From assembly GCA_000320545.1 (NCBI GenBank), contig ADNK01002694.1, positions 1 through 57,061 of the forward strand: a stretch of DNA of 57,061 nucleotides, in the 5' to 3' direction. The notes beneath the pieces are model-generated. The model saw nothing but the letters and a program-made list of their open reading frames with translations. It searched no databases and was not told the DNA's origin. The DNA comes from Bigelowiella natans CCMP2755. Taxonomy: Eukaryota; Protista; Cercozoa. Position 1 is the stretch's first letter. Each line of letters starts with the position of its first letter. Below are positions 3,987-42,413 of this stretch, one piece after another. The position numbers were made by a program, and so were the translations under genes.

Positions 3987-4708
3987 TATTGCTCGTTACC
4001 GCTGAGGGGCGTTGATTTTGCTGCTGTTGCTGGTTCGCAGCGGAAGTGGCAGCAGCAAGCATTGGATCTGTTTCACCGGTAGGCAGCGATTCCGCAGGGG
4101 CGGGGGTGGCGGCGGATGCGACGGGGGCTGTTTTTGTGAGCTCCATTATCTTTGCCGTATTAGGGTCAACTGGAGGTTCCTCCTCCTGCTGTTGCTGCTG
4201 CTGCTGCTGCACAGGAGGGGGGGGAGGGGTCAACTGCTGAACAGCTGCTGCTGCCGCTGCTGCCACTGCTTGTGCCGCACCACCACGCATCAGAGCATCC
4301 ATTGCTGTTTTCTCTGCTGAATTCTGATTCAGTGGTGGGGGCGTCGCGCTCTCCGTCGTTGCCGCTGTCGGGTGTACTGGAGCGGGAGGTGGGGGAGGGG
4401 GGTAGGGCGAAGACGATACGGGTAATGGAGTCGTGGGGGCCTCAGCAGCGGAGCCAGCAGGTTTGTTTGCGCTGGCAGAAGCGTCGGTGATCGCTCCATC
4501 TGTGACAGTAGCAGTGGAGATGGAGGCCGATGGGGATGGCGATTTTGACTTCTCCGCCTCCGCTTTCGCCTTATTTGTCGCCGGCGATGTGGGGATTTCC
4601 GGAGGTTGGAAGCGATTATCATTTTTCGTAGTAGCTTCCGTTTCGAGCTTCTTGCGGAACTCGTTGAAGCTTTTACGTCGGAAACGATCCTTTTGTTTTC
4701 GCATCCTT

Positions 4709-4798
<90 letters not shown>

Positions 4799-13869: not shown

Positions 13870-15010
13870 TGGTGGAGCAGGAATTTGAGGTAGCACACGA
13901 CACATGATACACTGGACACAGCCCTCATTTGCGGCACTACTAGAGTAGGGCACAGCATGCGATGCCGTGCAGTATTTTCTGTAGCGCGCTCGTATGAATA
14001 AAACATTATGATGAAGTAATGACAAGCTAGCAAGACACATTAGCATGCATCGCGCATGCTGCAGGCATGAAATAGGAAGAAGGAAGTTGTGTACTACATG
14101 TTGCTCAATGCACATACAGCTCTAGTAGCATAGTAGCTAGAGCCAGCAGTACAATTGCTCAATTATCATTGCGTCATTGCAAACGTAACACTTCATTCAT
14201 AATCGTCCAATCAGTGAAAAGGCTGCAACGCAACACCATGACTGTGCAACGTATAGCTAGATAGGGCGAGCACAATGCATTGCTTTGTGCATGTGACATA
14301 GTGACAACCAAATGCGTGTGCATGCGATCATGCGATGTGCTGCGTGCTGCGCATCGGCTCCATCATGTGATTGTCTTGCCTGATCGCCGCTGCTAGCTAG
14401 CTATCTAGCTATGGCGGGCCGGCATTCTATGACTAGATGACTTGGCCGCCATATGTACGATCACATTCCTTCTGATCGGAGAAATGCACACATCGATCAT
14501 GCCGTCTGAATGTCTGCCAGCATTGTAGCAAAAGTCAATCTGTTGTGTGCTCCATGACTACACTGCTAGTACATGCTGTTCGCATTGCATGTAGAGCGAC
14601 AGTGTTTGACGTGCAGCTCACTCGCATCGTCGATACGATCTAGCTTGTCGCGTAGGCTCGCGAACTCTGAACTGTTCTAGTGTTCATCCTCGCTAGCTCG
14701 CATATTGGCGTGTGCTCTCTAACCGTGCACAACAAGCTGTGCTCAAAGTTGGCACGCACTCTCTAGACTCTGCATGCAGCATTCTAGCATGCTAGCATGG
14801 ACCTACTCAGAGACTTTGTTCCATAGTTATTGCAGCTGCAACTTGCACGTCTAGACGCGCTCAAATAGTAAAATTGCTTGCTGCGATGAACTATCCTTCT
14901 CCATGCGCACAATGATCACAACATGAGGCAGCGGGACACTTTGCCTCTACGCTGCATGCCCCTATGCTATACACAACGCACTGATTTCACTGATCTGTTC
15001 TAGTGCTAGC
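13870..15010. other. CTAG-scar-rich convergent intergenic region
   Basis: Seven perfect NNNN-CTAG-NNNN motifs (starting 14023, 14253, 14401, 14429, 14673, 14689, 14788); excess TGCA/CATG. Confidence 0.85.
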
Positions 15011-33737: not shown

Positions 33738-36378
33738 TGTGTGTGTAGTTGTCGGCGGGGAGTATATGCACAAGCACTATATAAAATTCTCGAAGGAGAG
33801 TTATACACGCTCTCTGACGTTGCTATCAATCCTTACAGGCGATTCAGAACCTTGTAGAGAGCACTCTTGAATTTTCTATTCTTTTGCCTCATCTTCCCTG
33901 GCTCATCGACGGGCTGATCAAGGCCGTTTCCACGTGATAACCACATACTCATTTTCGCCATATTTATCATCTTATTGAGCATCCCTCCCAAGTCGCAGAA
34001 AGTATATCTATTTGCATACTGACTTGTGTGTGCAATACTGGACGCTCCTGCAAAGTCACACATAGCTCCCCCCCCCCCCCCACCTCCCCCTCTCTTTTCC
34101 CTGTTGATCACGGCTTCTCAGATCCAACAAAGAAGTAAGCGGCGGAGCTTCTGAGGCCCTTGGCGCGCTGCTCGGTAAAGTCCCGCCTTCAAGGCATCTT
34201 CTCCTCGAAACGACCGTTCGAGAGCTCAGAAAGCGACTGCAGGCCGCGGTGGAACGTGGATGTGAGCGAGGGCTTTCGAAGGAGCAAGAGAGGGATATCA
34301 ATTGTAGTCAAGAAAATCTGACCGCGGCGCTCGCTGGAGCTCTCGTCCGGCTAGGAGCTCAGGTGCCAGAGGTCTGGGATTGCTTCATCGTTTTGAAGGA
34401 CGTCATAAAGCGTGGAATGCCCGGTGCACATAGCGATGCCATCATCGCCATCGGCAGTATAGTAACAGGTGAGAAGAAGATGAGAGAATCCAGTCGCACG
34501 CTGTTCGCTCTATGCGGCAGATTAGAGAGTAGCATTATTTTACTACTAGTTTTATGAATTTACTTCTTTCGGGTACTGAAAACGCCGAATATGTTTGGTA
34601 ACGCGAGTGAGGACCTTGCGGAACACATTTTATCAATGTTTTCCCCAAGAGTCGAACCCAATCATTTCCACACACTCGTGAATATATGATGACGAAATGC
34701 AGTGCTTGGTAGGAAGAGGGAGATGAGATTGAAGGGAAAGAGACTCCGAGACGGCCAAAATTAAGAATGGGCCTTTGGGATGGGGGAAATGTGCGACAAT
34801 TGGGCGACACTCTAATTTGATTTTTAAGTTTTTCGCCTATGGCAACAACACAACACAACAACAACAACAACAACAACAGATAAATTCAACGGCATCGACC
34901 TCAACAAGGACCCAAAACATCGGAAACACATGGCCGAGCTGCACTCAGTGCTAATGAATTGCCTCCAGGCCGTAGATGAATCCGTATTCAGCATGTGCTT
35001 GACTTTGATATCGGACATCGCGCAGAGCTTCCCCTCCCTGATGGCCGAAAGGCTTGATGAATACATGAATCTGCTGGATCTTGCCTACTGGACAAAGGCT
35101 GCTGCAGAGGGCTCCTCGCAGGTGCAGGTGATGACCTGCATCGGTGATGTTGCCTTGGAGGGCCGAATGGAAAAGCACGTGGGAAAGATAATAAAGATCA
35201 TGGACAATGCGCTTCTGTTGGCCTCAAAGAGCCAGGTAAAAGTACAGCTTATTCTCTTCTGAGGAGCTGCATCATACAACCTTAAACATTAGAAGGCTGA
35301 GGAATGTGGAGGGAAATAATAGACTAATTGAGCGCTCTGTTTCAATGTCTTCTCAACCCCGCTTTCGTCTCCCTCCCTTGTTCCAAAGACGGTGTGTTCT
35401 CCTCAGTCTCCTCAAAATGGCGAAGGAAAAAACGATGATGAGTCCGAAATCACCCTGAGCCTAATTGAGGCAATTTGTGACATGTGGACGGGACTTTTCC
35501 AGGGGTTGCGGGGAGAAGATAAGGGTATGCAGATGGTACAGAAGTAATCATCACTTTACGCTCATTTCTTTTGGCCGTTCGTAGCTCTAACGTCGTTTTT
35601 CCGCATGAAATTGTCATGATTACGACAAGCTCAACAGCATTCACATCGATAACGTTTTAGACCATCGAGAGTTGGAGAAATTGATAAATTGCAACAGCAA
35701 ACACTACTACATAATTCATCCGTGTGTGTTGTGATTGGCGATCAGAGTTACCATTGATGAAATACGTGGGGAAGCTAGCAGCTTTGATGAATGTAATGGC
35801 GGCCATGTTAGACCATGACAGTTGCGAAAGGGCGACCGTAATGACTTGCGGCATTATTGGGTATTTTTTCAAAGTATAATACCAAAAGATCATTATATTT
35901 TCTAATAATAGAGCTTAACTTAATAGACGTACATTTTTGCATTATCGTCAGAAATATTGCGTGACACGTCAGTATCTTGTATTTTTATTCTAAAATAACC
36001 GTCATGCTCTCGTTCTCTTCCCTCCTAGCACTGAGTCACCATTTTAACTACGGTTCCTAACAACTTGTTTTTCAATTTTCTCGCATCAATTATTGTGTAA
36101 TAAGTGATATGGCTCCGTACGGGGTGAAATGCATGGAAGTGAAGAAACTGATTCTCGAAAATCCGAATGTGAAGAAGATTGTAGCTGCGGGTCTCAAGCA
36201 AAAAATTCACAATTCGGATTGCGACGCTAAGTCGGTAACATATGCCAAAACTGCTGTGGAGAATCTTCAGCGCAAAGTAGAAGGATCAGTTGCAGATGAA
36301 CAAACACAAACTGGCCCTAAGACGGCATCGACGTTGACGCACCCAGTGCCAAACTCGCCTTCTATGCCGCCGATCTAG
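32213..36378 (+). CDS. Divergent importin-beta-1-like HEAT-repeat protein, multi-exon
   Basis: VIEQWNQIAESE, YIKNAAPNLVKFLLENMMKQ, AAEICLHEVGICLEEDVIPHVWPFIRSNIRSTNWRRSCAAVVALG-ATLE, VKESSLFCLGK, HSDAIIAIGSI, VMTCIGDVAL. These follow the order of importin-beta-1 segments from about HEAT 7 onward. Upstream exons unresolved. Confidence 0.8.
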
Positions 36379-37149
36379 AAATCGAGTAGTTGTGGAAGTG
36401 TCAAATTTCAAAGAAAAATCGATGCCTTGCGGACTCACAGGGCGCGATGCAGGCAATTACTAGATGATTTGATCACTTTTCCCCCATGCATTGCATCGTC
36501 ACTGTGTCACTGTGCTCTGTGCTCTGTGCTCTGTCTAGCTGTGCTCATGTCACATGCGTCGCGCACGCAAGGGATCGAGCTGTGTAGCAAACAGTCGGGC
36601 TTTGACACAAAAGACAACCGGGTCAGCAAACAATGGGCGTTCATGCGATACACGCCATGTCTGCAGCTTCGTGTTCCATGCACGCGTCATTGCTAGATTG
36701 CTTGCAATGTCCATGCTAGCATGGCTAGATGGTGCTTGGCGCGCTGTTCATTGTCCGATCGACAGCAATGATGTGCGATGCAACCAGGATCGACTACTAG
36801 ACTAGAGGAGGGCACGCACATGCACATCGCTAGATCGTCTAGATCGTGCATGCCGATCACGGACACACGGAAGCCACACAATCCACAGCACCAGAGCATG
36901 CATGCTCACATGCGCGGGCTCAAGTCTAGAAGTCGTGTAGCACGGCTTGCAAGACGGCAAGATTGCATCATCGGAAGTGCCAACTGGTCCACTCTGGCAC
37001 TGCTGCTTCGATCCCCAAAATTGAAGGAGACCATCAGCAAATCGAAGGATTTGTTTCACATCCACCGGCTGTGGCACTTGCTAGCGTGGACTCACCATTG
37101 TCACTTGCACATCACACACTCTTCATTCACCAGCCACCTTCCCATTTCT

Positions 37150-37459
37150 CTCCGCCTCTTCCGCCTCTTTCTAGCAGAGCGCGTCTTTCGTTGAACCTCG
37201 GTGTCATTGCGAAAAAGTCCCACGACATCGCTGTGACCCCTAGACCCTCTTTTGAAGCCCAGCTAGCCAGTCCAACGCGGTTTTGCAGTCGTTGTTCTTG
37301 GCCTCGATGTTTGCCTTCGTGCCAACCAGGCACTGGACAATCTCCAAATGACCCCCTTGAGCGCCCAATGACAACGGTGCACGACCGAAATTGTCCTCAA
37401 CCTCAGACCTGTCTAGCTGTGCAAACCTCGATGTTTGCCTGTCCCCTCTCCATCAAACG
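37150..37459 (-). pseudogene. Ankyrin-repeat pseudogene fragment disrupted by small insertions
   Basis: Minus strand reads RLMERGQANIEV / EDNFGRAPLSLGAQGGHLEIVQCLVGTKANIEAKNNDCKTALDW / ASKEG / HSDVVGLF, i.e. canonical ankyrin repeats; slashes mark frameshifting insertions. Confidence 0.85.
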
Positions 37460-37521
37460 GAGAAACCGGGAGTACTCGAGAGTACCCGGTGGAGAGTACC
37501 CGCTTGCACCGGGCACTCACA
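37460..37521 (+). repeat. Left TIR of the MULE
   Basis: Matches the reverse complement of 41904-41954 apart from a 14-bp internal insertion duplicating GAGAGTACCCG, a small terminal indel, TATA->TGCA and TATA->CACA. Confidence 0.85.
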
Positions 37522-37951
37522 AAACGACCTCAAAATCCGAGTTTGATAGCGAAGTACTGGAACTTCGTGTCAATTTGTCCGTAACGTTGATGAAAATGGA
37601 ATGTGCACATCAACAACGCAAACGTGATCCTCCCAAGTGCGGAATGCGTAGCATCACATGCCAGCATTAGCACAAGCACATTTGCATCCATTTCCACTCA
37701 TTGCCATCACGTGCTGTGCTGCTGACATCTGCGTCAGCATGGTGTGTTTGTGTGTGACTGGGTGTGGCGCGCATGCCGCTCTCGCACGCACCAGCGCACA
37801 CACAGGTCTAGCAGATCGAAGTGCGTCTAGACGTGCTACGTGTGTGCATTCATCTGTGTCAGCGGTGTGGCCGCGCCACCCACGATTGAGGAGCTGTCGC
37901 AGCATGCGCACGCCCACTCGTGCTGCACGCTGCGCTGCGCACATGCGCATG

Positions 37952-38134
37952 GAAGTTCTCAGAACTTCGGGAATCTTCGAGAAGCTTCGAGAATCTTCCA
38001 GAAGCTTCGAGAACATTCCGGAAGATTCGAGAATCTTCCAGAATCTTCGAGAGCATTCCGGAAGCTTCGAGAATCTTCCAGAAACACTCGAGAGAATTCG
38101 AGAGAATTCTGGAAGATTCGAGAATCTTCGCGAA
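37952..38134. repeat. 10-bp-period GAAnnTTCnn minisatellite (heat-shock-element-like array)
   Basis: Eleven in-phase units at 37971-38080 (GAATCTTCGA, GAAGCTTCGA, GAATCTTCCA, GAACATTCCG...) plus degenerate flanking units. Confidence 0.9.
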
Positions 38135-38508
38135 TGCGCCGGAACCCAATGCGCACATGCATGCTGCGCAAGTCACAACTCATCATCAGAATTCAAACGC
38201 ACACAGGACCGCGTGTTGACACTTGCTACATCAACAGCACAGTCCCGCGCACAAAAGCTAAGCAGCTACCGCAAGCCCGCTAAAAATCTGTTACAGTCCG
38301 TGCAAATGCAACGTGTCCTTTTGTCAGACTTGCTGTCTGTTCAAATTTCATCTGTCCTGTGACTGTGCGTGCGCATGTGTGCATCGCATCATCGTGCGTT
38401 GGTGTGTGACCCAAGCGCTGCTAGCGCTGTGGCCGCTGCTAGCGCTGCTTTGCATGGCTAGATGGCCAGATAGCTACGTTTAGATGACCATTGAAAAAAT
38501 TGACATGT

Positions 38509-38885
38509 TCATTTGAGCATTACTCCTGTTGCATGCGCATCACTGATGCTTGTTAATGTTGAACCCGCAGAACCAATGAACATTGAGGAATTAAACCACT
38601 GAATAAAAGTCCTCTCATTGGCAAAAAAAGTTTTAGGTTCAATTCTAACTTGAGAAGCAATCATGGGATGATTACATCCATGATGTTCGCAATCAATCTA
38701 AGGATTTAGAGCATGAAATTGTGTACCGAGAGTTTCAAAAATTCTGATATTACTGTTAATAATTTCCTGAGAGACGTCAGGATTTGCGTTTAAAATATTC
38801 TCATCATTTGTTTGTCCTTCCTGTTCTTTAATTAATGCTTGATATTTTTTATACTCAGAACCTATGACACCATCATTGCATCCAT
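38509..38885 (-). pseudogene. AT-rich fragment of a VTC (vacuolar transporter chaperone, DUF202 domain) gene inside the MULE
   Basis: Minus strand 38649-38593 reads VRIEPKTFFANERTFIQWF, followed by NSSMFIGSAGSTLTSI. This matches the VTC1/2/3/4 EPKxFFANERTF motif. In-frame TAG upstream and premature TGA at 38509-38511. Confidence 0.82.
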
Positions 38886-38929
38886 CTCATGATTGTGTCT
38901 GCAATGCAGCTAGCTAGCAGGCAATGCAA

Positions 38930-41739
38930 TCAATCCGTCAACAAAACATCAAGACTGGCTGCTTCAGCGGCATTTTCAAAGTGTTTCGGACATTTCCGTG
39001 AACGCTTGGTGTGACCCGAAATCCCACATGCACTGTACTGCCTGTTCCTTTTCTTCACATTCATGCACATGCTGCTCTTGTAGCGACCTGGTTTGCGGCC
39101 AGATCGTTGCACCGTCCGTGGAACGGACACGTTCTGAGCTGGCTGCGATAGAGAGGCAAGCACCGTGTCTCCATCATCTTCCCTTTTTTTCTCTTTCCTC
39201 TCCGCTGCCAAGGATAGCAAAGTATTCGAAGTCAACCTCAAGGCCGACAACTGCACACCGGAGGAATCCATCCCAGACAAAGTGTCACGAACTCCATCCG
39301 CCAACGCATCAACGACGGTGTACAGGGTCATCGTTTTCGCCGCATACGCGCATATGTTGTCAAACTTGGCTCTCAGGTTGAGATATCTCTTTCTGGGGTC
39401 GATGCCGTCTGCAACACCACCATCCAAATCCCCAACCAAAAGCTCCCTGTCATGGTCCTCCTCATGGTCCTCATTCTCATCGACGTCGATGTCGACATCG
39501 CTGTCATCTTTAGAATCGATATTGGATTCGACATTGGATTCGACATTGGATTCGACATCTGACGTCAATTCTGAATAATTCCTCTCAACAGGCAGGGCAA
39601 ATGTTCGCTTCCACCTGTCAGCGAGCATCTTGTCGGAATAATTCAATTGGTTTTCATGGTCCAACACTTTCAGAATGTGCCTGCAGACGATACGATATGC
39701 AGTGTCTTCGTGACAAGAGCACTGCCACCCGGGATCATATCCATCCAAGGCCACGTTGCAGACGGTTACTGTTCTCTCGACCGGTTTTTCCCCATCACCA
39801 AGGTCTGTGCGATGACGCACCACGTAGCCATCAAACTTCTTTTCGACGTTGTATTCGACCTGGTAATTGCCTATCACACCAAACTGGGTCTTCAAACGTT
39901 CGACGGCCCAGTTCGAGTTTAGCCTGGCAGCTTCCTTCAAAAACACATTCTTACCAAGCCTCAGTTTCTTTTGGAGGATGTTCGTGGCGTTTTCATCTGC
40001 CTCCCTTTGTTCCTTGGCTCGCATGGAGCGATTGTGTCTTATGGTTGCAAAAAAATATTGCACAAGCGACAGCGTGCCATCATCTGTGAACAGATTGTAA
40101 GAGTCTATGGAGTTGTTCATCGACTCTGCTGCTGAGCTGTCATAGAATCCTAGGTTTATGTTCTTGTCGCGTTGATACTTGACGAACTCGGCGTCCCGTT
40201 GTTCCACGTATTCTTTGACCATGTTGACCTCGGCAGGAAAGTTCTCTTTGAAAGCATCCCACTTGCGCTTAAACTGAGCTTCAGATGAGGCATACAATAT
40301 TTTTTTTATCTCTCTGACGGCAGCGGTGCGGTAACGGCGGCCAGCGAGACGTTTACTGATATTTTGCCTCTTGTGCCTCAAACAGCGCTGGACCTTGGCA
40401 TCCTCAATTATTTCTGCCACCTTGTCTCCACTCACTCTGTCGTCCATTACGAAGGTGGGTTTCGGCAACATCCACGACCTTCTCTCGATGCCCATGATCG
40501 ATTGGATTTGCTTCAATATTTCTTGCATTGATTCTGTGGTGTCACCCACTGCCAAGGAATAAGCGATCGGCAACACCATCTTCTCTTCACTTATCACAGA
40601 TGGTATGAAGATGGAGAGATCATAGGCGACCCTCCCAGCCGCCCCGCCAAACATGACAACGTCAGCGAGCTTCCAAGCTCTTCGTATGTTGTCGCTGAAC
40701 ATCCATGTCACTCGCATCATCGTTCCGTCATCGTTCGTTGAAAATCTGAAAGAGACAGACGACACTGTCAGTATCACAAGTCAAATGATCATCATCTTTG
40801 TGTCCATTACCTGTACTTCACAACTCCTCGTTTCTGGTATCTGTGCAGCGCTTCTATCAACGCTTTCCCACCATCGCTATTGTATGCTATGTGAGCTAGT
40901 TCGCGCAGCAGTTCTTGCTCACGGGCCCGTGTCAGGCAAAGAGATTAAATCTTTGGGATCTGCGCTCTTTATCCGTTTATCCACCACAGCTTTTTTCACC
41001 CTTATGATCAAGTTGCGAATCTTCTCAGCTGATGTTCCCACCACCTTGTCATACCCGTTTCGAATGATCCAAGCACGGATTTGCCGGTATTTGAGATTAA
41101 ATTGAAGAAGGTCTGCCAACTTTTGCAACATAGGGGCCGATATTTTTTGGCCTCTCCTCTGGTCTATAATCCTTTTTCTTGCCTCGCTGCCCGCGTTGCA
41201 CCGCACCGTGTGCTGGAGAAAGCTTGAGTTCACCTTCTGCACACCCTCCTCAATTTCTGGGGAACACACCATCACACCACACATGATCAACAACATCACC
41301 AAAAACGTAGCTCTGACACTAAGCTAATCGGATGCAGACATGGAAATCTGGTACGGGAATCGAACCCGTGCCTCCGTTTGCTACACACACACACACACAC
41401 ACACACACCTTTAATTCTGATTTTGAACTTACATCCGCACTTTAGCGATGTTCGATTTCTTTTCTGATTTGTTTTTCTTTTCCTGTTGTCCTTTTTTTTC
41501 TTTCCGAAACTGACGCACGTGAAAACGCTAAGTTGATCCTTTGGAGATCCATTTTGATATACTCTAAAGCCAGTTTCAGCTGCAAGGTCAGTAACCTTCT
41601 CTATCAACTCTTTTCTCGAGCAATATATTTTATTTCCGGCCTTGAATTCGTGCCATTTGTCCCCGTGCTCCCGCGTCCAATCATCATCCATAACATGAGC
41701 CATAACATCCTCTTCTGAGTCCTCCTGATCACTTGCCAT
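38930..41739 (-). CDS. MULE transposase (FAR1-like DNA-binding domain, DDE domain, SWIM finger), several exons, probably catalytically dead
   Basis: FTC...RTSLKCGCKFKIRIK; DVVMFGGA (first Asp position is Gly), FVMDD, RCLRH, SSAAESMN; SWIM CSC...IVCRH; degenerate knuckle YSACGISGHTKRSRKC. Confidence 0.9.
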
Positions 41740-41903
41740 GGTCACAAAGGCGAAATTGATAAGGAATTGAAAGCTCCGTTCCGTGCACTAAAATGTGATT
41801 TGGTGGAGGTCTAGAGGAGAGGTGAGAGGCGGGGGAGAGCGAGATGGGCAAGGGGATGGATGAGGGGCTCGAATGGATACATGTGCATGTATTTGAATCC
41901 GCT

Positions 41904-41954
41904 TATAAGTGCCCGGTATAAGCGGGTACTCTCGAGTACTCCCGGTTTTCATCT
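41904..41954 (-). repeat. Right TIR of the MULE
   Basis: TATAAGTGCCCGGTATAAGCGGGTACTCTCGAGTACTCCCGGTTT is the inverse of the left TIR. Confidence 0.85.
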
Positions 41955-42413
41955 CCGGGGAAACATTAGGCGGTGCATAAAGGCGTGGACGCATAACATT
42001 TCTCCATCAGACGCTTCAATGACAGCAAGATCATTTCGGTTCACACCACCGAAGATGACGACATCGTGACTCTGCCGATTCTTTCTGCGGTGTGCCAAAC
42101 TGCGACTGTGCAGAGATGCTGGACATTGTAGCGGGGACAATGCTGGTGATGATCGTGAGGAGGGCGAGGAGAAGCTGCAACTTCATTCATTTTGTCATGA
42201 GCAGGATTTCCTGATTTCTCAAGTCGCAGCGCGAAAATCCAGGGCCGTTTACCACAGTACTCTTTCTCCCGAGGAATTTTAAATAATTTGTCGGCAAGTT
42301 TTGAATTTTCCCCCAAGAGGATTTGAAAGAACAGAGAGGGGGGGACACGGCGGTTGAGGTCAACGAGCTCACACCTTTGCTCATAGTGCATCAGAGCACG
42401 CTATTGGCAGCAA

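Follow-up and report, generated by a model that had tools for sequence, protein, structure and literature searches.

Stereotyped CTAG insertions postdate the loss of TpA in an ankyrin gene relic of Bigelowiella natans

Introduction

On a contig of Bigelowiella natans CCMP2755 (assembly GCA_000320545.1, ADNK01002694.1, forward strand, 57,061 bp, the whole of which was analysed here and is called the window), a broken ankyrin-repeat reading frame carries three short words in which CTAG stands between two identical copies of four bases. Were these words brought in from outside, or were they copied from bases that had already been there, and how do they relate in time to the loss of TpA dinucleotides from the same DNA? 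The original prediction, made from the letters alone, saw in the locus an ankyrin pseudogene that records two processes directly, an insertion of CTAG-bearing 8-mers (hereafter scars) and a TA-to-TG mutation. The locus lends itself to such questions: an ankyrin repeat with hundreds of intact relatives can be used as a base-by-base ruler for the polarity of insertions. Here, we describe the relic and its setting, its comparison with the paralogues, the abundance and the placement of the scars, the order of the two processes, and the mechanisms which may have produced the scars.

Results and Discussion

The relic is what remains of the 3' end of a dead ankyrin gene

The relic occupies positions 37101..37441 of the minus strand (about 99 codons) and corresponds to the C-terminal part of an ankyrin-repeat gene, with approximately 2.3 ankyrin repeats followed by a basic tail and a stop codon at 37101-37103. 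Its reading frame is broken by three insertions. When the unbroken piece at 37267-37398 (minus strand) was compared with Pfam, both Ank (PF00023; 23.8 bits, cut-off 21.1) and Ank_4 (PF13637; 26.3 bits, cut-off 22.7) were found above their cut-offs. The canonical distance from the TxL motif to the GH motif, and that from repeat to repeat, appear in the relic only with 8 + 8 and 25 nucleotides deleted, when it can be aligned gap-free with the 27 and 14 paralogue units described below, and the deletion of these 25 + 8 + 8 nucleotides by script leaves a single open frame of 99 codons up to the stop codon. Since neither TAA nor TAG is possible in DNA devoid of TpA, the openness of this repaired frame is weak evidence when taken alone.

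We searched the window with the paralogue proteins by tblastn. Matches were obtained at the relic locus only, and all of them end at 37261-37273, either at the upstream edge of the first scar or a few bases away from it. The relic is placed between the 3' end of an importin-beta-1-like gene, on the one side, and a transposon of the MULE type, on the other. The last exons of the former (34930..36378, plus strand) were recognized by their open reading frames and by the Pfam domain TPR_IMB1 (E = 4.7e-8), and the stop codon lies near 36378, ahead of an island of scars. The near (left) terminal inverted repeat (TIR) of the MULE is truncated, lacking its outer 55 bp or so, and adjoins the relic at about 37455. 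No ankyrin homology was found by tblastn in the window beyond the MULE. Taking this absence together with the importin and MULE setting, we conclude that a dead ankyrin gene, formerly convergent with the importin-beta-like gene, has left its 3' end stranded here. The upstream remainder of the gene was probably removed by a rearrangement linked to the MULE.

The relic shows what is expected of a pseudogene, namely frame-shifting inserts, of which it has three, and a missing upstream part of the gene. A close intact parent gene was not found in the genome, where the best matches reach about 70% identity at the protein level and at most 90% at the DNA level over 60-100 nt. It is extremely improbable that the resemblance to ankyrin is due to chance, that the locus is a live gene which uses frameshifting, or that the scars are errors of assembly or sequencing. 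Such explanations are countered by the Pfam match above the cut-off on an unbroken piece, by the DNA identity of 80-90% shown by the paralogues, and by the truncated transposon end that has taken the place of the missing upstream part. They are countered likewise by the thousands of scar copies, which form a graded series of decay, and by one scar common to two MULE copies that are 97% identical.

Intact paralogues show that the scars are insertions

The assembly (91.4 Mb in 3,736 contigs) harbours a very large ankyrin family, with 83 matches at the DNA level and more than 500 protein (repeat) candidates. We aligned the relic with 27 repeat units (using MAFFT) and with 14 repeat units derived from intronless paralogues. 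For an intact paralogue on contig C2038, the best named relatives are the JGI 'Bigna1' gene models. The family differs in its intron content: many paralogues (loci L002-L008, on contigs C239, C777, C1536 and C554) have one intron per 99-nt repeat, always placed after the G of the final Asp-Gly, and introns between repeats are absent from the relic as well as from loci L036, L037 and L040 (on C2038, C970 and C1827).

The three 12-mers reported in the original prediction are present at the positions given there, and its reading of the minus strand was correct. Written on the plus strand, scar 1 is CCAG-CTAG-CCAG (37259..37270), which separates the codons for W and A in the third repeat; scar 2 is ACCC-CTAG-ACCC (37236..37247), which separates those for G and H in the GH motif; scar 3 is CTGT-CTAG-CTGT (37409..37420). 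In the alignment with the 27 units, the stretch from TxL-W to GH is longer in the relic by exactly 16 bases (8 + 8). In that with the 14 units, the relic has 25 surplus bases (17 + 8) at 37399-37423 (minus strand), consisting of a 17-nt insert and of scar 3 nested in it. Direct repeats of GAGGTT (37424-37429 and 37399-37404) flank the 17-nt insert, so the claim that the third scar lies inside a further GAGGTT-flanked insert proved right. Scar 3 is younger than the 17-nt insert which encloses it.

None of the paralogue units in either alignment (27 and 14 units) has the 8-mers. The C2038 unit spans both joins without interruption, and 19 of its 21 bases are the same as in the relic minus the two 8-mers. 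As this unit reads across both joins, the ancestral sites contained no CTAG and no TA. In addition, the scar-bearing 81-mer has no second locus in the 91-Mb assembly. Because the paralogue units are devoid of the 8-mers, the tblastn matches end at the scar and the 81-mer is unique, CTAG must have been brought in. The 8-mers are thus true insertions of new CTAG and not copies of pre-existing sequence, as had been claimed from the letters alone, and each scar is an 8-bp insertion composed of CTAG and a 4-bp duplication of the target. No paralogue already bearing the 8-mers, the first of the observations that the original prediction had named as speaking against itself, was found in the assembly. 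The CTAG words are therefore to be regarded as 8-bp insertions bringing new CTAG, rather than as duplications or as a sequence signal.

This comparison also bears on the idea that the 12-mers arose by slippage, or by tandem duplication of existing CTAG-bearing 8-mers, without any new CTAG. Runs of (CTAG)n do occur, and the MULE copy on contig C3196 contains (ATAGCTAG)x5 at the place where the copy in the window has 2.5 decayed units; both observations are in line with slippage. However, tandem duplication predicts 16-mers with two CTAGs and not 12-mers, and at the ankyrin sites the paralogues have neither CTAG nor TA, with the C2038 unit being uninterrupted. At the ankyrin locus, slippage is excluded by the comparison with C2038, and as a general account of the 12-mers we consider it highly unlikely.

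Scars are stereotyped and occur in large numbers

We counted all NNNN-CTAG-NNNN words with identical flanks in the window and found 40 of them, of which 36 are non-trivial, against 0.72 expected. Among other palindromic tetramers that are not of microsatellite origin, there is a weak excess at most (the highest is CATG, with 4 against 1.3 expected), and when 4-bp repeats in the window are considered with any spacer of 1-8 nt, CTAG is the sole spacer enriched. The duplication amounts to 4 bp in 40 cases and to 5 bp in 7 cases (0.18 expected; 15% of scars), and there is no excess of duplications of 3 bp (2 vs 2.9 expected) or of 6 bp (0). No other recurrent spacer of up to 15 nt was found in combination with 4-, 5- or 6-bp duplications. 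A target duplication of fixed length kept on both sides, as is expected of an excision footprint, is thus seen in these two classes (4 bp, n = 40; 5 bp, n = 7), and the residue between the target copies is constantly CTAG. The symmetrised target preference calculated from 154 scars is S|M-N-N-K|S.

The scars are not limited to the window. A search of the genome with CAAG-CNNG-CAAG returned 2,501 matches, compared with 192 for the control, and among the first 100 of the 2,501 matches 78 have CTAG. By extrapolation from this one target word, the genome contains roughly 2-3 x 10^4 scars. In 226 kb, we found 213 perfect scars and, in excess of the background, about 60 whose duplication has a single mismatch. 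Scars with one mismatch are thus few in comparison with perfect ones, which indicates that the average scar has diverged by only a few per cent. Our search of the literature on CTAG scars, footprints and 4-bp duplications, with or without Bigelowiella, returned nothing relevant.

Scars are found downstream of gene ends

Scars lie downstream of the ends of genes as different as the importin-beta-like gene, the C2038 paralogue (L036) and even the MULE transposase. The importin-beta-like gene is followed on its 3' side by an island (36531..37420) with ten perfect scars of the 4-bp-duplication kind and one with a 5-bp duplication, at 36834, and the relic of the dead gene has three scars in 200 bp. 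Two further islands in the window, 1830-2460 (9-12 perfect scars) and 14023-14799 (7 perfect scars), each measure about 0.6-0.8 kb, and 24 of the 33 TpA in the former are inside CTAG. In the ankyrin loci overall, 14 scars were found in 67 kb. The introns of the sampled intron-rich paralogues are almost free of them, and at the intronless paralogues they are placed in the flanks.

On the contig derived from a nucleocytoplasmic large DNA virus (NCLDV), no CTAG scars were found in the 8.5 kb sampled, where rho(TA) is 0.47-0.50. We observed separately that the assembly contains a single NCLDV major-capsid-protein gene (G000:C3187:124672-125196, locus L075; Pfam Capsid_NCLDV, E = 3e-44), around which rho(TA) is 0.50 and the number of CTAG scars in 3.5 kb is zero.

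The MULE next to the relic (37455..42004, minus strand; 4.5 kb) was recognized by the Pfam domains Transposase_mut and SWIM, by its inverted repeats of about 113 bp (the right one at 41892-42004) and by near-identical copies on contigs C1497 and C1794. It contains a 615-aa transposase open reading frame at 38930-40777. Members of the family, on C1497, C1794, C1498 and C3196, are 95-98% identical to one another and are accompanied by target duplications of about 9 bp. Judging from these identities and from the intact transposase reading frame, the family may still be mobile. Between the left end of the MULE and its transposase gene lies a tandem array of 10/20/40-bp units with many internal inverted repeats (37960-38135).

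Within the MULE, a small cluster of scars is present at 38416..38476, with the transposase stop codon about 450-510 bp upstream of it, and is common to the copy on C1497. It comprises two scars with 5-bp duplications and ATGG-CTAG-ATGG, and outside this single 60-bp patch the body of the MULE is free of scars. Copies differ at 38454-38476, where both the window and C1497 read ATGG-CTAG-ATGG-CCAG-ATAG and the copy on C3196 (L023, at about 4673-4716) has (ATAGCTAG)x5. This array indicates that the 8-bp unit of a scar, once present, can expand by slippage, and that its TpAs then decay to TG/CA. The neighbouring MULE itself was considered as the agent which makes the scars and was rejected, as it has GAGAAATG... 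ends and a target duplication of about 9 bp.

TpA was erased from the relic before the scars were made

When the scars are left out, the remaining 222 nt of the relic contain not a single TpA, against 12.8 predicted from the paralogue units (Poisson P ~3e-6). TA is present in at least a third of the paralogues at seven alignment columns, and at four of these the relic has TG or CA. The remaining TpA number three and are all inside the scars; with scars included, rho(TA) of the relic is 0.24 and rho(CA+TG) is 1.36. In the island at 36450-37195, 12 of 17 TpA fall within CTAG, and the corresponding values are 0.41 and 1.63. Both the relic and the island thus have the composition of the TpA hypermutation published for B. 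natans. The two features go together more generally. In 500-bp segments with scars the median rho(CA+TG) is 1.56, compared with 1.15 in those without (P = 7e-8), and in the same segments rho(TA), calculated with CTAG masked, is 0.34 vs 0.69. This co-occurrence of scars with TpA poverty and CA+TG richness was seen again in independent loci (P = 4e-15). Since the viral contig is hypermutated, yet scar-free in the 8.5 kb sampled, hypermutation alone does not make scars.

To determine the direction of the change, we compared three MULE copies (window 38941-42004, L021 on C1497 and L020 on C1794), polarising the differences between the two closer ones with the third as outgroup. T>C or A>G changes made up 20 of the 44 polarised changes, and 10 of these occurred at TpA (12.5% of T sites), while the reverse change, CpA to TpA, was found three times. 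Of the 25 private changes of the C1497 copy, 10 are from TA to CA/TG, and the 19 of the window copy include none of this kind (Fisher P ~0.002); this confinement to one copy shows that the process is patchy. The cores of scars decay in the same sense: CTGG/CCAG was found 47-54 times, vs 10 times for TTAG/CTAA. An asymmetry of TG versus CA between strands, which is predicted for R-loops, was not found in the islands, except at 36800-37195.

The TA to TG/CA (A:T to G:C) direction claimed in the original prediction is thus upheld by the TpA-free relic, by the polarised MULE substitutions and by the decay of scar cores. The codons on which it had relied, those of GRAPL and VQCLV, do deviate in the TA-to-TG sense; as evidence they are thin, and one of them has a natural precedent, since at locus L042 (contig C1200) an intact paralogue reads VRCLV, with Cys at the position in question.

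Both the process and its direction have already been published (Mettrop et al. 2026, bioRxiv 10.64898/2026.01.13.699255). In that mutation-accumulation work on B. natans, 230 of 231 new mutations in two virus-derived regions were A>G or T>C. By the authors' account nearly all of these occurred at TpA, and they were present in some lines only; an adenine deaminase was proposed. To this the present locus adds hypermutated tracts of less than 1 kb behind ordinary genes, a hypermutated relic of a host-type gene, and the tight co-localisation of the erasure with scars.

The order of the two processes can also be read. Mutations in TAG or CTA contexts constitute about 20 of about 206 in the NCLDV region (hand tally of the table of Mettrop et al.), and scars elsewhere do decay at their TpA. 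Because these contexts do mutate and all the TpA remaining in the relic nevertheless sit in scars, the scars of the relic are younger than its TpA erasure. Two processes are therefore ordered in time at one site, with the erasure first and the scars later.

Origin of the scars

We consider it somewhat better than an even chance that the CTAG 8-mers are footprints left by the excision of a cut-and-paste element which duplicates 4/5 bp of its target. The history of the relic has two steps. Hypermutation from TpA to TpG/CpA, thought to proceed through deamination of adenine, stripped the relic of every TpA, and three stereotyped hits, each leaving CTAG and a target duplication of 4 bp (in other scars sometimes 5 bp), followed. 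The donor would be an element which makes a staggered target cut of 4/5 bp and has symmetric ends of the type CT...AG or CTAG...CTAG. Every excision would leave both target copies and a self-complementary CTAG between them, either because the transposase cuts slightly inside the element or because the CTAG ends are cohesive. The scars pile up in islands of less than 1 kb behind the 3' ends of genes, and such an element would strongly prefer DNA just beyond the ends of genes. A transposase acting on identical inverted ends would indeed be expected to produce what is seen here, with a constant stagger, a target preference that is symmetric and a palindrome as the residue.

We looked for the donor in the window and in about 180 kb of other loci, allowing TIR matches of at least 10-12 of 14 bases. 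In these approximately 240 kb of island-rich sequence, no TIR pair starting with CT or CTAG and accompanied by a 4/5-bp duplication was found. Nor was a conserved 8-mer found beside the CTAGs that do not belong to scars in the same 240 kb, where only (CTAG)n runs and intron repeats were encountered. The Pfam domain of piggyBac-type transposases (PF13843) has no match in the genome; this is weak evidence, because the control genomes were likewise devoid of a match. It would be unusual for an element to leave tens of thousands of footprints and yet not be visible itself, and the scars are more uniform than is usual for footprints produced by end-joining repair, which speaks against the footprint reading.

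Scar formation might also be visible in mutation accumulation. In the tables of the study cited above (bioRxiv 10.64898/2026.01.13.699255), none of the 21 de novo indels found in 3,132 generations is a CTAG scar, and CTAG insertions are nowhere mentioned in its text and tables. A steady-state estimate, in which ~2.5 x 10^4 scars of 12 sites each are multiplied by 3.5 x 10^-10 per site and generation, gives about 0.3 events. As, by our own inference, only some 0.3 scars are expected in 3,132 generations, the absence of new ones is uninformative. The same tables contain another regularity: 7 of the 13 de novo insertions end in ACA (for example +GACA, +CAACA and +TACGCGCAACA), and one multinucleotide change is TGGC>AACA. 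The ACA-ending insertions may be a second stereotyped insertion signature in B. natans. Inosine repair at a doubly deaminated TpA was also considered as a source of the scars and was set aside, since its 4-nt overhangs would be centred on TA and the ankyrin targets have no TA.

The host might have made the scars without any mobile element, and this could have happened in two ways, neither of which we find likely. According to one, a nuclease, for example a type II topoisomerase, would cut the DNA at transcription-termination zones with a stagger of 4 nt, and the breaks would be repaired by fill-in together with a constant CTAG filler. Fill-in of breaks made by type IIA topoisomerases gives rise to 2-4-bp duplications in yeast and in human cancers, and the 4-bp duplication seen here is equal to the stagger of these enzymes. 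The position of the scars behind gene ends and between convergent genes fits this explanation, as do the preference for C just before the cut and for G just after the duplication and the lack of a donor element in the 240 kb searched. However, the chemistry of topoisomerases supplies no constant CTAG, 15% of scars have a 5-bp duplication, and plain 4-bp tandem duplications are enriched only 1.8-fold in the islands, partly owing to CTAGCTAG. Repair of this kind is therefore an improbable source of the scars.

The other way, to which we give slightly less credence still, is deliberate editing, in which a domesticated transposase/integrase-like enzyme, or a nuclease-ligase, would write a palindromic cassette into DNA marked by the cell for hypermutation at TpA as well. 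The cassette would shift the frame by +2 and place TAG on both strands, and it would serve as a second arm of genome defence or as a boundary mark. In its favour, scars and TpA erasure share the same short stretches, the products are extremely uniform, a dead-gene relic was struck three times in 200 bp, and, here too, the 240 kb searched contained no donor. On the other hand, the sampled part of the hypermutated NCLDV-derived contig has no scars and the MULE body is scarred in one patch only, which indicates that being foreign or hypermutated does not by itself make DNA a target. We know of no candidate enzyme, and of no comparable editing system anywhere. If host editing were nevertheless true, Bigelowiella would possess two tools of DNA editing, base editing and micro-insertion, acting past the ends of genes and on dead genes.

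We thus prefer excision of a cut-and-paste element as the source of the scars. They would be the trace either of an exceptionally active 'hit-and-run' transposon strongly targeted to 3' ends or of a new kind of insertional mutagenesis. With either origin, the scars provide a cheap built-in clock and mutation recorder for B. natans.

Comparison with known systems

The footprints of Tc1/mariner elements consist of a TA duplication kept on both sides of a few bases derived from the element ends (TA-CATG-TA type). The scars described here resemble those of Tc1/mariner and Sleeping Beauty in that the target copies stay, with a few bases between them that would here too derive from the element ends, and in that symmetric ends would lead to a palindromic or nearly palindromic residue. 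However, the target of Tc1/mariner is TA, whereas here it comprises 4 bp (5 bp in 15% of scars) of nearly any sequence and the residue is always CTAG. A further difference is that tens of thousands of footprints are gathered here in islands of less than 1 kb behind genes, and that the donor was not found. With respect to the length of the duplication, the closer likeness is to Ginger2/TDD and other integrase-type DNA transposons, which make duplications of 4 or 5 bp (Kojima and Bao 2023, PMC10045372). The ends of Ginger2/TDD are, however, TG...CA-like, which predicts a TGCA residue, and TGCA spacers are not enriched here. The topoisomerase-II-dependent duplications of 2-4 bp known from yeast top2 mutants and from the human signature ID17 share with the scars a 4-bp copy arising from a break with a 4-nt stagger. 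Nothing is added between the copies in those events, whereas here CTAG is constantly present and plain duplications are barely enriched.

As to the erasure of TpA, our observations agree with the hypermutation described by Mettrop et al. in its target and direction, in the depletion of TpA and enrichment of CpA + TpG, and in its patchiness, with some copies being affected and others not. The scale is different: those authors reported two viral regions together with 124 clusters that measure 3 kb or more, while here we deal with a 340-bp relic and with islands of less than 1 kb. The tracts described here lie behind ordinary genes, and tracts of such sizes would be missed by the 3-window rule applied by Mettrop et al. 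The process is also reminiscent of RIP, as in both cases dinucleotide-specific transitions degrade repeated or foreign DNA and leave a compositional scar. RIP, however, converts CpA to TpA (C to T), which is the opposite of the change from TpA to CpA/TpG observed in B. natans, and the ankyrin relic, unlike the targets of RIP, is not a close repeat of any sequence in the genome.
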